A stretch of DNA of 57,428 nt, filler included, from Platydemus manokwari (Eukaryota), in NCBI GenBank assembly GCA_037951405.1. It is 5 parts of 5 records of this genome, joined end to end, with 100 filler letters (N's around TTAATTAATTAA, not from the genome) between each part and the next. Parts side by side here need not be neighbours in the genome. Positions count along the whole stretch, not along the records: positions 12,920 to 22,573 come from JBBMOY011221876.1; 4 more parts are not named here. One strand, 5' to 3'. A program made the translations under genes and the position numbers. Each line of letters starts with the position of its first letter. Position 1 is the stretch's first letter. Of this stretch, positions 6,711 through 18,320 are shown piece after piece. The notes beneath the pieces were generated by a model. The model was not told where the DNA came from and ran no database searches. It saw only the letters and a list, made by a program, of their open reading frames with translations.

Positions 6711-9013
6711 TATTAGAACATTTCCAAAAATTCAATTCAATCGATAAAAGCATTTGCTTCAATCAGTTTGAAAATTGTCTTCTCTCAAAAACACTTTGGA
6801 CTGCATTGTCAAGACAACAAAATTCAGAACAAGTCCACTACACATCTCCATGCCACTGATAGAGGACAGGAAAATCGAAATTTCTAGTGAATTTGTAGAG
6901 ATTAGAAATTAAAATGATTCCCATTGGTTAGTTCTTAATTAAATTTGTATTTGTGTGGTTGTATGAGTGTGACGTAGAGTGATCGATTACAATTTTTGCG
7001 GTGAGGCATTTGATCTTAAAACAAAGATAAATGGTTTAATTTTGAATGGAATTATAAATCATAAATTGTTTAATTTTTAATATGAATGGTCTTCATAAAA
7101 AATTTCAATTTTCTGATAGCATATTTAACCAACCAATATCCAGTAGACAATTAATTTGGGAATTTTAATTTTTGAATTTCTTTTTTCCTTGTTAAAGTTT
7201 TCAATGAACAATTCTTTCTCTGGTGTCATAGAGTTTTGTGTTTGTCTATAAAAATTTAATGCTTTAACAGTTGCTACGAAATGTTTGATTGGATAAATAT
7301 ATAACACATGATTAATTGGATTCTCCTATTTCTTCACTACACAGTCATTTATATTGCTAGACAACTGACTGAGAGTGTTTTATTTGATTTCCCATATGAA
7401 TCAGGTAAAATTGATTTTGATATTATGTAGATATTAATTATTTTCATATTTTTTTCTTGAATTTTTCAACTTTGATTAATTCCAAATTGTGATGATTCTA
7501 TTTATTTGATTTCAAGAATTTGAATTTATTAATTTCAATTTATCATTTTAGAGTTGTTTAAATTTATATTGTACTTAAGTTCAGGAACGAAATCAACACT
7601 TTCACAAATAAAATAATAACAAAGATAATTTCCAACGCGATGCTCTCAAATATTGTACAGAATAAGTTTCGATCTTAATCTCATCACAAGAAAATCAATA
7701 AAAAGTAGCCTGGAATTTCAAATAATTTAATTACGAAAAATTTTTGGATCCTAAACTATTTCTTTAGCTCGTGATTATCAAATATCAAACCAAAATCGAT
7801 AATTTGTATATAACAAGTATGTACACACATAATATAACACAAGTATAAACACACATAATCAGAGTAACGAATCAAAATTCATTTTACAAATTACTCACAT
7901 TTACTGGAAATTTTCATTGCTGAATTCTACTCTCTTGGCTACTATGGTCATCTCCTGTTTTTCATTACACTTTTTTACAAATTTTGTAACATTTTCTGGA
8001 ATAATTTCATTATTTATCTCCATTTAAATTTATTTGATTCCAAAGAATTAGTATTACTCGATAGCAATATTTCTAATAATAGATGACATAAAAGATGAAA
8101 TAAAATATAATTGACTTTTTTAAAATACAATTTAATATAATTTATTTAAAAACGAAAAAATGTATTACTAACTTCATTAGAAGTTCTTCGATATTATTTC
8201 GATATTGTTAATTATTCAATGCTAACAAAATTCGATTTGATTTCCAGTTCTAAGTATTTCACTAATCAAGTTATTCGCCTGCATTCCCAGAACAAATAAA
8301 ATGACTCTGAATTACAATTGTTTTAGGTTTGTTGATAAGTGGTAGCGTTACATAAACTGTGGATATAATGTGAACATAAATGATATGCGATAAATCCATT
8401 GTGTTAAAATTCATATTACGACCTATTCTTGCGGAATTCAAATTCTTAATCACGATTTAGCATAGAGTCACTGTAAAAATATGAATTTCAAGTTGTGAGC
8501 AGTTTCTTAAGACAAACTGTTTGTAAAAACATAGATTTTTACTCACTAAATATCTATAAATATAAATTTCAAATATGCGGTTTTATCCATAGATTTTAAT
8601 AAGTATTATTAAAACATAACATCAAACTTTTTAAAATTTATGTTTTGATATTTACAATTTGAAATATATAAATAAATTACTGTAATAATATTTGGAAATT
8701 AACTGTTTTAATTAAAAAAAACATTATATTTATTTGTTCTAATAAATTAAACAAATTATATTCTATTATATTATTTGTAAATATATTCGTTTCACTAGAA
8801 GAGGCCATAAGAATTATGAAAGTTATTCATCAGACTATGTACGATTCCAACAGAAAGTATATCGATAGATCTATTTAGTAGTTCTTTATACACTCAAATC
8901 AATAAAACCTGGAATGTACAATTTAATAATTTTCTAATTGGTAGATCAGATTCCATTTTATTCTCATTGAAATTGCATTTTGGTTCCAAATCATTAAGTC
9001 TATCACAGTTATT

Positions 9014-14008: not shown

Positions 14009-15588
14009 TTTTGGTGTATTTTTTGTTGTTTTTGAAGCAGATGAAGATCGAACATTGACTGATTTATTCGAATTGCTTCCGGCACTGGAAGTATCCTGGT
14101 TGACACTGGTAGAAGTGTTGATTTCGTCTGGATGATGATAATTGTTACAATGGCAATTAGATCAATGTGATTTACCTTTACGATCTGATAATTCTTTGGA
14201 ACTATTCTGATGTGGAGGAATAGAGCCATTCATATAAATGTCGGAATTGTTTCCGGAATATGGAGATTGTGAACCTCTCGACACAAATGGGCTATGAACA
14301 TTATATGGACGATTTTGATGCATAACACCACTGGGAGGAGGATAACCGTAACCGGGACCTGGGCTAGATGTTTGAATATAATTTGGATAATTAATTGTTG
14401 GCGGACGAGCCATTGAACTTGACATCATTGCATTATTATTAGGATTAATATAATTGTGAGTATTATTTGATTGTTGGGGATTTGTGTAACGAAATTGCGA
14501 ATAATATGCCGAATTTGGATGCATCATCATATGGCTATAAATCGAGTTGTCATATCCCACAGACGACGGCTGTACTTTCATTTGAGCTGAATTGAAATAC
14601 AACATTTTAATTTTCAACTCCGTTTATTTCAAAATATATTTATTTTACATTGGTTGACTTTATTTTCATAAGCATAATTAGGTCCATTATGCATATCACT
14701 TTTATCTGATGTTGAAGAATCTGTACAAGACGTATTTAAATGGAAACCAATATTAACATTTGAATCTGATTTTGACGTATTACAATCAGACGATTCGATG
14801 GAATTTTGTTTATCAGATTTATTCTAAAAATTGAATAAAAAACTAAATTAAAATTTGAATTAAAATATAGCAATAAAACAGATTTTATTTTAAAGTAAAC
14901 AATTTTAAATAAGAATATAATTTAAACAAATAATTTAAAAAGCCATGAAATTTACCTCGACATCGATTTTGTTCATATTATCCTTGTTATTGGAATCCAA
15001 TGGACTAATGGGTTCATTTTTTAGTTTCCAATCTGAAATATTTGACTTTGACTTATCTAAGTCATTATTTTGATAGCTTCTATTTTCTGATTTATAGTTA
15101 CTATTCCCTTGTATATCACTTGCCATCATATTATATTCAACATGCTTAATTTTATCAACTTTGGAATAGGTAACATCATTCGTATTTTGGGGATATGAAT
15201 CTTGATATTGTGAATAATACATACGCTAAATCAATTAAACATAACGTTTCGATATCAATGAACCATCACTTACAGCTGATTCTGCTTGAGATCTTGATAA
15301 ATTCCAATTATTTTCATAATTTCTATAATTTGCATGATAATTAGTTGAAATAGGTGGACGTAAAGGCAAATTGGAATAAGGCCCATACTGATTATTTTGC
15401 AAAAGTTGGTTAAGAGATGAAGGTTGATTTTGATATTGATAAGCTTGTTTATCTTCATAATGACTATATATAGCAGGTGATAAGACTCCAGCTTCATTTG
15501 AATTTTCACCAAAGTTATGGACACCTTCTGTTGACATGTGATTTGGCGATTGTAAATTTGCTGTTGATCCTGAGTTTGAATATTCCAT
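14009..15588 (-). CDS. N/Q/S/Y/P-rich low-complexity protein, 3'-incomplete (exons 15588-15274, 15225-14956, 14823-14649, 14586-14176, 14127-14009)
   Basis: Five exons join in frame through GT-AG introns of 48, 132, 62 and 48 nt. No folded domain recognised. Downstream exons were not found, and gaps lie at about 12.8 and 13.3 kb. Confidence 0.7.
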
Positions 15589-16911
15589 TTAAATAAAAAT
15601 TCCAATTGATATCGATTGTTGAGTGCTAGAGTAAATGGAGAAGAAATTTGAAATTGAGTTTTATAAATTTACAATAAGAGCTCCTAAATAAAAAATATAC
15701 AAGAATTCAGAAGCTCATAGTAAAACTCAATTTTGCACACATTGAATTAAATAGCATACCACAAAGTTAGACTGAACGTAATTTCTAAAGTAGGAACACA
15801 AAGCGATTTTGAAAAATCCACTAGACGATTATAAACCTTGAAATAACGATGTCATAAGTGATTTTGCTTAATATATATCGTTATTAAATAAATCCAAAAA
15901 GTTAATTGAGATGAATATATTTAAGTGAATATTTTTAAAACCTGTATTTAAATGACTTAAAAAATAATTTTTCCATAGATATGAATATATGGAAAATTAT
16001 AATAATATTATTTTTAAATCTATATAGTGCAACTTAGAAATTCAAGAGAAGCATGCAAAATATTAAGTGAAATGCCGCATCAATAATGATTTATTGACTG
16101 TTAGTGTGTGGTAATTACTCTAAGAAATTCATAAATTGAAATGTTAATACCTTTAAAAAAAGGCAATTGTTTAAAGGTTTTACAAAAGAAAATTGTTAAA
16201 TATGTCATATTATTAAATATTTTTTAAATAAATCACTCAATACTTAGTTCCCCATTTAAAAATAGTGATTTTATTTTAATTAAAAATTAATAAAATTAAG
16301 CTACTTAACATTGTAGTTGTTCGTGCGACAACACACTGAATCAACTGTCGCCTGCTAAATTCTTCATAAAGTAAGCGCATGATATCTTGTCCGTTCTCTC
16401 ATTACCATTCCGGCCTGCAGTTTTTGCAAAACCTATTTACGAGCCTAGCTAGCTCTTTTTATGTTTTATGCACGGGTTGAAGCTTAGCTTATTTGCGCGC
16501 ACTACTGCCTTACATGGTAAAAATTTTCAGTAGATTCTGTTCAACATAAAACTGTTTTCAGATGCTAAAATAAGTAGTATTGCTTTATTAGTAGCTAGTT
16601 AAAAGAAAAATTATTTTTATTCTAAAGCTATATTTAAATTTTAACATTAAACACTAAAGGGGAAATCTGAAGTTGAATTTGCAGTGGTGAGTTGTTGCTT
16701 AAAATAATATCGTCGAGGAGCCAATAAAATTAGAGATTTTAATTTCGTTTATAATCAATTAATTAATTTCAAATGATAATTTTTTCACTAGAAAATCTTT
16801 TGTCCAAATATCGACGTAAAAATTGACTTTTTCCAGAATTTTATAAAATAAACACGATGACAAAAAAAAATCAATCAAAAGCCAGATAAATATTTATTAA
16901 ACTCATAACAC

Positions 16912-18085
16912 CTATGACAAACAATCAGTTGAGCCTATGTTGTTATTATCACTATTTGAACTATCTCTATACATGTACGAATGCATTGAAAGCGTTTTCA
17001 ACCAGGTGAGCATCGATTTTTCTTCGGTTTCGATTTTGAAAATGTGAGAATAGACGAATTTCTCGCGGAATTCTTCGATTTGCGTTTTGTATAAATTCCA
17101 ATCGATTGGTTTTCTTTCACCTTCGACAGCATATTTCTCATTATATGAATCATAATTCACTCTATCGAGCACTAAACCCAGTCCCGGAGCTTTCGGTATG
17201 TCAACCTGTTAATATTTATCGTATTATAATGATCGCGACAGAAAAATAATTTACCTTCATCAACTGAAAAACTCGATCAAACACAGTTTCATCACAGAAT
17301 CCACGGACAACTGCCATCGTTAAACCAATCATTTTCCTGATTTGATGGAGCATAAATGATTGACCATTGATGACAATTGAAACATATTCACAATCACCAT
17401 ACATGAAAGGCTGTTCACATTCAAGACTCATTAAATATCGCCTACAACTAGAATCGGTTGGTGCTCTTCCAGATGTGAAATTATGGAAGTTATGGGTACC
17501 TTTAAAGAAAGACAGGACTTTATTTACTTTATCTAAAGAATCATTATTCAGGCGAAATGAATATAGATTTTCATCATCAATTTCTTTTGGGGAGAAAGCA
17601 TAACTCGGGGTTATATAGCGATAGGTTCGATATTTGCATAAACCTTTGGCATGGAAACTTTTTGTGGTTCGAAAAACATCCAAAATACGAATTTGTGGCG
17701 GTAATTTTTCATTTATCATTTCAGCAGCATTTTCGGATTCAGATAACTTCACTGAACAAACTTGTCCAATAGCAGATACGCTCTTGTCAGTTTTCGACGC
17801 TCTCTGAAAACGCATTTTAACTGGTTGTTTGAAATTCTCTTCATCAATTAATTGTGCATCAAACATAGCCTGCAAAATATCACCTTCTATTGTTTTAAAA
17901 CCTTCGTTACGCTGCATTCCAAAATAACCCACACCAGAATACATCATCATCATTGCACACATTTTCTTACGCTGAGCACAGTTAATTTTAGATTTTTTCG
18001 AATCAATCAATGTTTCATTGTTATCTTCAACTTTTCTCTTCAACATATGGGATTGATCTATTATATCGTTAATCATTTCTGGCAT
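16912..18085 (-). CDS. PUS1: tRNA pseudouridine synthase 1 (TruA family); exons 18085-17255 and 17205-16912
   Basis: YSGVGYFGMQRN, catalytic RASKTDKSVSA, GTHNFHNFT, GQSFMLHQIRKMIG. A 49-nt intron restores VDIPKAPGLGLVLDRV. First ATG is 18085; the track start at 18109 is TTG. Confidence 0.95.
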
Positions 18086-18086
18086 T

Positions 18087-18320
18087 TTATTGATCAGATT
18101 TATCTTCAATAGTTTTTTTTAAATTTACAGCTTCAGAATATAATTTTCCTTCAAGTTTCTTTTGTGGTAGCAATGTGTTGTAATAATTGTAACTATTGTA
18201 AACTACTTTAGCGAGAAATCCTGTAGTTCCTAAGATTATAATTAAAACTGATAATTGATGTGCTTTATCTAAAATTCTATTTTTAAGAGATCTTTTAAAT
18301 TGCTGTTTGAAATTTTCCAT
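18087..18320 (-). CDS. COX14: Small single-TM protein resembling cytochrome c oxidase assembly factor COX14 (77 aa)
   Basis: RILDKAHQLSVLIIILGTT...YNSYNYY matches the Cox14 pattern R..D..HR..VL.L.GGT...Y (as in yeast Cox14), followed by a charged tail. Size and single TM fit. Confidence 0.65.
   Translation of the reverse strand: MENFKQQFKRSLKNRILDKAHQLSVLIIILGTTGFLAKVVYNSYNYYNTLLPQKKLEGKLYSEAVNLKKTIEDKSDQ

Follow-up and report, generated by a model that had tools for sequence, protein, structure and literature searches.

The closest described counterpart of the locus considered here is the bicistronic sloth1-sloth2 gene of Drosophila, whose products are the orthologues of human SMIM4 and C12orf73; its two open reading frames (ORFs) are separated by a 5-nt gap, and reporter assays are in favour of leaky scanning, the first AUG being in a suboptimal context (PMC9681215). 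Here we describe a comparable locus on the minus strand of a 57,428-nt stretch of DNA (the window) joined from parts of the genome of the flatworm Platydemus manokwari (GCA_037951405.1), in which a 77-aa ORF of the COX14 family stands directly ahead of the gene for pseudouridylate synthase 1 (PUS1). The locus resembles sloth1-sloth2 in that the upstream ORF would encode a small single-pass mitochondrial protein that helps to assemble the respiratory chain, the gap is of a few nucleotides, the two frames differ and the linkage appears ancient (PMC9681215). It differs in its partners, since sloth1 and sloth2 are two small paralogues that act in one complex and have been tested experimentally, whereas here the downstream product is an enzyme of 374 aa from another, unrelated family, the spacing is 1 nt and translation of both ORFs is a prediction from sequence.

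Two other kinds of system invite comparison. The spliced-leader (SL) operons of flatworms, described in S. mansoni and in cestodes, are likewise same-strand pairs less than 300 bp apart, some of them conserved between cestodes and trematodes (PMC12582326). However, these operons are defined by the SL on the downstream gene, whereas the COX14-PUS1 junction has no room for a 3' end and its AUG desert points to coupling at the level of translation. In humans, mitochondrial microproteins encoded by upstream ORFs (uORFs) or bicistronic transcripts have been reported, a similar case of a conserved small mitochondrial protein within the nominal 5' leader of a larger mRNA; the polycistronic transcripts surveyed there involve another gene pair in another phylum (PMC13303939). 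Literature searches combining COX14, PUS1 and bicistronic returned nothing relevant, so the pairing appears to be unreported, and the type of arrangement is already known from Drosophila sloth1-sloth2.

On balance, we lean towards the view that the locus is a conserved flatworm bicistronic gene, with both proteins made from one mRNA and PUS1 reached by leaky scanning. In such a gene, one transcription unit would carry the 77-aa COX14-family ORF and then the PUS1 ORF, 1 nt past the stop of the first. Some 40S subunits would bypass the COX14 start, the sole AUG in that ORF (U at -3, G at +4). They would then move along 232 nt in which no frame contains an AUG, until they reach the AUG of PUS1, with its A at -3, and begin translation there. 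An earlier note made from the DNA of the window (hereafter the sequence-only reading) had proposed one mRNA for two mitochondria-related proteins and had left three routes to the second protein side by side: leaky scanning, termination-reinitiation and SL addition. The idea of a shared mRNA gains from a tandem that is kept across the phylum, from intron-free contigs that bear both ORFs and from the ATG-free span. Among the three routes we favour leaky scanning over reinitiation or SL addition, because of the ATG desert and because the gap between the two ORFs varies from 1 to 52 nt.

Two genes one nucleotide apart

The features of the locus are given below in window coordinates. L001 is a genomic contig of a related species, and L002 and L003 are transcripts of the same clade.

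18087-18320, minus strand: COX14-family ORF of 77 aa, with ATG at 18320, last codon CAA at 18092-18090 and stop TAA at 18089-18087 (ORF listing and Pfam)
18086, minus strand: intercistronic spacer, a single A (sequence reading; the same 1-nt spacer in L001)
17255-18085, minus strand: PUS1 exon 1, 277 codons, with ATG at 18085-18083 and A at -3 (Pfam and homologues)
17206-17254, minus strand: PUS1 intron, 49 nt, GT..AG (sequence reading and relatives)
16912-17205, minus strand: PUS1 exon 2, with 97 codons and then the stop TAG (16914-16912); L001, L002 and L003 are collinear with it in their C-terminal parts
18086-18317, minus strand: ATG-free span of 232 nt in all frames, from after the COX14 start codon up to the PUS1 start codon
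18113-18120, minus strand: A8 run in the COX14 coding sequence (codons Leu-Lys-Lys-Thr)
16893-16898, minus strand: AATAAA hexamer, 14 nt past the PUS1 stop (sequence reading)

The junction had been described in the sequence-only reading as a stop at 18089-18087, a 1-nt gap and a PUS1 ATG at 18085, and these coordinates are correct when re-read on the minus strand. The 1-nt gap is beyond chance, because the independent assembly of a related species (L001) shows TAG-A-ATG at the same place. L002 and L003, which are spliced, do not have the 49-nt intron; genomic L001 has an intron at the same site. The AATAAA hexamer at 16893-16898 is likely to serve as the poly(A) signal of the COX14-PUS1 unit, and transcripts L002 and L003 have a AATAAATAAATA motif at the equivalent position, just ahead of their ends.

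The upstream ORF belongs to the COX14 family by Pfam assignment. The family model (PF14880) matches the 77-aa ORF with 31 bits against a cutoff of 25 (E 2.2e-7), a score above the curated gathering threshold that upholds the COX14-like identity first proposed from inspection. Two orthologues, P0137 (34.5 bits) and P0139 (35.5 bits), likewise exceed the cutoff, and COX14 is the sole recurrent Pfam family among the set of small ORFs (10 of 23 members, 3 of them above threshold, best E 8.7e-9). The window ORF shares with COX14 its size, a single transmembrane segment and the Pfam score. Its most hydrophobic 19-residue stretch covers residues 23-41 (mean Kyte-Doolittle hydropathy 1.98) and is the only strongly hydrophobic one, and the product is predicted to be a single-pass membrane protein with its transmembrane segment there. 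COX14 (yeast Cox14, human C12orf62) links the synthesis of COX1 with its assembly, and we suspect from the family assignment that the small ORF encodes a mitochondrial cytochrome oxidase assembly factor. To our knowledge, human COX14 is a stand-alone gene that does not lie beside PUS1.

A search with a profile built from the small ORFs of the flatworm loci retrieved 21 proteins of 77-98 aa, and every named one comes from cestodes, trematodes or a monogenean. The window ORF is linked to the small ORFs of Neodermata, its orthologues, by the recurrent COX14 matches, by an alignment that is collinear and has no internal gaps, at an identity between the window clade and Neodermata of only ~25%, and by hhalign (84.6% probability, E 6.9e-6). 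More general searches returned little. Neither the 77-aa ORF nor the 289-aa ORF that includes PUS1 exon 1 was on record in an exact look-up, a protein word search with the 77-aa ORF gave no matches, and HMMER with a two-sequence small-ORF profile against 1.8 billion representatives gave one uninformative, repetitive match of 343 aa. No solved structure matched at E 0.1 or better. Four orthologues of the small protein (P0122, P0124, P0125 and P0136) carry the automatic UniProt/UniRef name 'Cytochrome c oxidase assembly protein COX16'. We rejected COX16 as the identity of the flatworm protein, since the Pfam scans gave no COX16 match even at E up to 10.

As the sequence-only reading had it, PUS1 is the downstream gene; the assignment is borne out by the Pfam score and by flatworm PUS1 homologues. 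Exon 1 matches PseudoU_synth_1 (PF01416) with 42.5 bits against a cutoff of 23.3. The two exons were handled separately, and 1925 homologues were found, four of which are 70-81% identical to the window sequence (the closest, P0001, at 81%). The best named matches, tapeworm and fluke proteins called 'Pseudouridylate synthase 1 homolog', are ~50% identical. In a FastTree phylogeny the window PUS1 and the four close sequences form a clade sister to cestodes plus trematodes (support 99), a position that most likely means a flatworm from outside the parasitic Neodermata. The protein carries a KTDKSVSA motif of the (R/K)TDKxVSA type, and D100 within it, which we take from established knowledge of TruA and Pus1 to be the catalytic Asp, is invariant in an alignment of four members of the clade. 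The window gene is thus intact, with two exons encoding 374 aa and the Asp of the TDK motif kept.

The tandem and its scarcity of ATG across flatworms

The COX14-PUS1 tandem is conserved across flatworm lineages and is not a local accident. Synteny in other flatworms, which the sequence-only reading had singled out as informative, was found in L001 and in L004-L008:

L001: genomic contig of an 81%-identical relative, much richer in GC; partial small ORF of 59 aa that ends in TAG; gap of 1 nt (A)
L004: Hymenolepis weldensis genome; small ORF of 79 aa; gap of 7 nt
L005: hymenolepidid contig that lacks the intron of L004; small ORF of 79 aa; gap of 8 nt
L006: Opisthorchis felineus genome; small ORF of 77 aa, unannotated (7727-7960); gap of 40 nt
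L007: opisthorchiid contig with a continuous PUS1 coding sequence (CDS) of 413 aa; small ORF of 77 aa; gap of 52 nt
L008: a further neodermatan contig; small ORF of 77 aa; gap of 7 nt

The PUS1 gene spans 29 kb in the O. felineus genome and is an uninterrupted CDS in L007. Intron-free, RNA-type contigs that bear both ORFs come from three neodermatan lineages (L005, L007 and L008). In addition, the contig given for the small protein in Mesocestoides corti, and likewise in Rodentolepis nana, has the same length as that given for PUS1.

The annotation of these loci is incomplete. The O. felineus record has no gene annotated for the 77-aa ORF upstream of PUS1, and in H. weldensis the NCBI model of PUS1 begins at the second Met (8001), the first in-frame ATG being at 7926. 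The intervening stretch (L004:7926-8000) adds 25 presequence-like residues to PUS1, which are conserved in L005.

Outside flatworms, one PUS1 transcript (L009, from ERR7672947) has a leader of only 117 nt with no COX14-like ORF in it, which is too little to say if the linkage is older than flatworms. The leader contains a 35-codon uORF (L009:6-113) that ends 4 nt ahead of the PUS1 ATG, is not COX14-like and has internal ATGs.

The second feature that the flatworm loci share is a scarcity of ATG between the two start codons. In the window (232 nt), in the available part of L001, and in L004, L005 and L008 this span is without ATG in every frame, which makes four of five lineages; L006 and L007 have one each, opening a 5-codon out-of-frame ORF. 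Stretches of the same length in PUS1 exon 1 of the window contain 6-11 ATGs (median 9); over the loci, such stretches of PUS1 CDS contain 1-11, and none has as few as the inter-start span of its own locus. Mononucleotide shuffles of the window span give a mean of 3.7 ATGs and a probability of 0.014 for none; across the loci the means are 3.7-4.7 and the probability is ~0.01 per locus. Consistent with this, internal Met makes up 2 of 1544 residues (0.13%) in 20 neodermatan orthologues of the small ORF, compared with 2.7% in flatworm PUS1. The DNA of the window clade and that of Neodermata can be treated as independent because only ~25% identity remains between them. An AUG desert classically marks a transcript on which ribosomes scan their way to a downstream cistron. 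Such a desert is unneeded for stop-start reinitiation or for operons resolved by SL addition, and it therefore favours leaky scanning.

Base composition also differs between the two ORFs. Third-codon-position GC in the window is 0.13 in the COX14 ORF (18087-18266) against 0.29 in PUS1 (17255-18085), and in L001 it is 0.32 in the small ORF (1-180) against 0.66 in PUS1 (182-1009). The low third-position GC of the COX14 ORF would fit a leader that is easily scanned.

Several points weigh against the leaky-scanning interpretation or soften its support. For the window species the evidence is genomic sequence, from which the shared mRNA, the translation of both ORFs and the scanning are all deduced; the one sequencing run found consists of contigs and gave nothing but spurious matches of 20-35 nt. 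A short-read contig that spans two ORFs is not the same as one molecule, since overlapping transcripts would assemble alike, and the window-clade transcripts L002 and L003 are cut at the 5' end, start inside PUS1 and are silent on the junction. The ATG desert is less striking in dinucleotide shuffles (P 0.05 in the window, ~0.05 per locus overall), and it is carried mostly by the amino-acid sequence, synonymous resampling being significant only in L008. Because the orthologues are related, their counts are not independent and the figures above overstate independence. A desert would also be expected if the first ORF merely overlapped a long 5' UTR (untranslated region) of PUS1. Finally, the start contexts are not uniform: those of the window (U at -3, G at +4 for COX14; A at -3 for PUS1) agree with leaky scanning past a weaker first start, whereas the hymenolepidids and L008 are reversed at -3, with A at the first AUG and U at the PUS1 AUG, and do not fit such a simple pattern.

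The leaders of some neodermatan loci contain short uORFs of their own. A 3-codon uORF ends 2 nt ahead of the COX14 ATG in both hymenolepidids (L005:6-17 and L004:7665-7676), and L008 has one of 14 codons (22-66), out of frame, that extends over the COX14 ATG. Such uORFs could help ribosomes bypass the COX14 start.

Routes to the second protein

The tight junction brings to mind termination-reinitiation, in which ribosomes would translate COX14, terminate at its TAA, and the 40S subunit would re-initiate at the AUG 1 nt downstream. The stop is indeed followed by the start after 1 nt in the window and L001 and after 7-8 nt in the cestodes and L008, and the exact 1-nt spacing has been kept between the window and L001 despite changes at more than half of the synonymous sites. 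However, the close spacing is not shared by all members, given that the gap is 40-52 nt in the opisthorchiids, and a gap of anything from 1 to 52 nt is hard to square with obligatory stop-start coupling. Removal of AUGs from a translated upstream ORF is neither needed nor predicted by this route. Reinitiation after an ORF of ~77 codons is, moreover, generally inefficient in eukaryotes unless special tethering elements are present. The nucleotides around the junction are conserved no more than the local background. A conserved junction element was considered on its own account and rejected, with 6 codons kept and 5 synonymously changed, as in the surrounding sequence. We regard reinitiation as distinctly unlikely.

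Our main rival explanation to leaky scanning places the resolution at the RNA level. Here the locus would give a polycistronic pre-mRNA, or overlapping transcription units, and the 5' end of the PUS1 mRNA would come from an SL acceptor within the COX14 ORF or shortly past it, or else from an internal start site. A candidate acceptor, CCAG|AA, lies ahead of the second Met of PUS1, and the COX14 mRNA would be polyadenylated within the PUS1 coding region. A given precursor would then mature into one mRNA or the other, not both. Such a route has clear precedents, as SL trans-splicing occurs in flatworms, whose genomes contain many candidate two-gene operons (PMC12582326), and overlapping transcripts are compatible with the short-read contigs. 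Some junction sequences are also suggestive: an AATAAA (18091-18086) overlaps the COX14 stop in the window, another lies in the gap of L005, and the stop TAG of L001 and L004 places an AG directly before the PUS1 ATG. The junction AATAAA might allow alternative polyadenylation of a short mRNA with COX14 alone, or it might have arisen by chance in AT-rich DNA.

These signals are not conserved, however. L001 has AATAGA where the window has AATAAA, L004 and L008 also lack the hexamer, and the stop is TAA in the window and L005. A gap of 1-8 nt is too short for a 3' UTR and a cleavage site before an acceptor. Among S. mansoni operon pairs with UTR data and evidence of an SL acceptor, 45 of 45 are at least 5 bp apart, with a median of 99 bp, and the accessible text and supplements of that flatworm operon survey do not contain the pair (PMC12582326). 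L005 and L007 match the genomes L004 and L006 collinearly at their 5' ends, so that no SL is seen on these contigs. An upstream 3' end followed by an acceptor, as in SL operons, is not found at the junction, which leaves an acceptor inside either coding region as the form that this explanation could take. As with reinitiation, an ATG desert over the whole upstream ORF is not required. We consider RNA-level resolution to be on the unlikely side, and leaky scanning on one bicistronic mRNA remains the reading that we prefer.

The A8 run in the COX14 ORF raises a third alternative, in which the two proteins would be one. If the run were truly A7 and the eighth A an assembly error, or if a programmed +1 shift or transcriptional slippage took place there, a single ORF would encode a membrane-anchored COX14-PUS1 protein. 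The sequence-only reading, which raised this alternative, placed the run where the PUS1 frame is already open. This description needs refining: removal of one A does join the frames without an intervening stop, but the last stop in the PUS1 frame, TAA at 18121-18119, shares the first two As of the run, so that the run straddles the stop and the frame opens no earlier than 18118, which leaves 11 codons ahead of the ATG. As a special signal the run was rejected, since the window has 6 A8/T8 matches against 12 expected, and this absence of enrichment also tells against the fusion.

Besides the joined frames, fusion has in its favour that PUS1 of the window clade has no presequence-like N-terminus, which would make another targeting route attractive. 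However, past the run the COX14 frame is conserved, with TIEDKSDQ-stop in the window and SIEIKADQ-stop in L001, where an Ile codon differs synonymously and the stops align; the run itself reads A6G in L001, which is no long homopolymer. In at least 20 orthologues the ORF closes at a conserved stop of its own, and even close tapeworms have unlike frame offsets (+1 in L004, +2 in L005). The conserved COX14 frame and stop beyond the run, together with the A6G of L001, disfavour both the fusion and the homopolymer error, and we find a single fused ORF scarcely credible. A conserved frameshift fusion is unlikely, and so, to a very high degree, is a low-frequency +1 shift or slippage at the A8 run that would yield some COX14-PUS1 fusion and carry a fraction of PUS1 to mitochondria on the COX14 anchor. 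A tamer version of the fusion idea would be a leaky-scanning cascade in which one mRNA gives three products: COX14, a long PUS1 and a short PUS1.

PUS1 targeting, surroundings and biological meaning

PUS1 pseudouridylates both cytosolic and mitochondrial tRNAs, and the start of the protein differs between flatworm groups. Residues 1-25 of the window protein (18011-18085) are acidic, with 6 D+E and 3 K+R, and so are those of L001. In Neodermata, the first 25 residues (L005:268-342, L007:331-405 and L008:288-362) are basic, with 0-1 acidic residues, and are followed by a second in-frame Met. This suggests that the N-terminus of neodermatan PUS1 is a mitochondrial presequence that is absent from, or was lost in, the window clade. 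The second Met suggests that neodermatan PUS1 may be made as a long (mitochondrial) and a short isoform by continued leaky scanning. Given the acidic N-terminus in the window clade, PUS1 may or may not reach mitochondria in this species. Of the 'two mitochondria-related proteins' of the sequence-only reading, PUS1 is thus an uncertain one in P. manokwari, where the acidic N-terminus is unlike that of parasitic flatworms.

The surroundings of the locus are sparse. No further ORFs were found within ~1 kb on either side, Pfam gave no matches to neighbouring ORFs, and an Rfam scan of the locus piece gave none either. Metagenome scans with an alignment of the PUS1 N-terminus and with a 24-nt junction pattern were also without matches. 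About 1.3 kb downstream of PUS1, on the minus strand (14162-15588), lie three ORFs of 95-151 aa that are rich in Q, N, S and P and have no Pfam match; they look like exons of a low-complexity protein.

If the proposed bicistronic gene is real, it would be an animal mRNA of this kind kept throughout a phylum, in free-living-type lineages, tapeworms, flukes and probably monogeneans. Two steps in the biogenesis of COX1 would then have their ratio fixed by one transcript, through an oxidase assembly factor and a tRNA modification for mitochondrial translation. Flatworm gene models and operon surveys miss or mislabel the COX14-PUS1 unit, and other pairs coupled in translation could be sought among the many flatworm 'operon candidates' simply by looking for an AUG desert.

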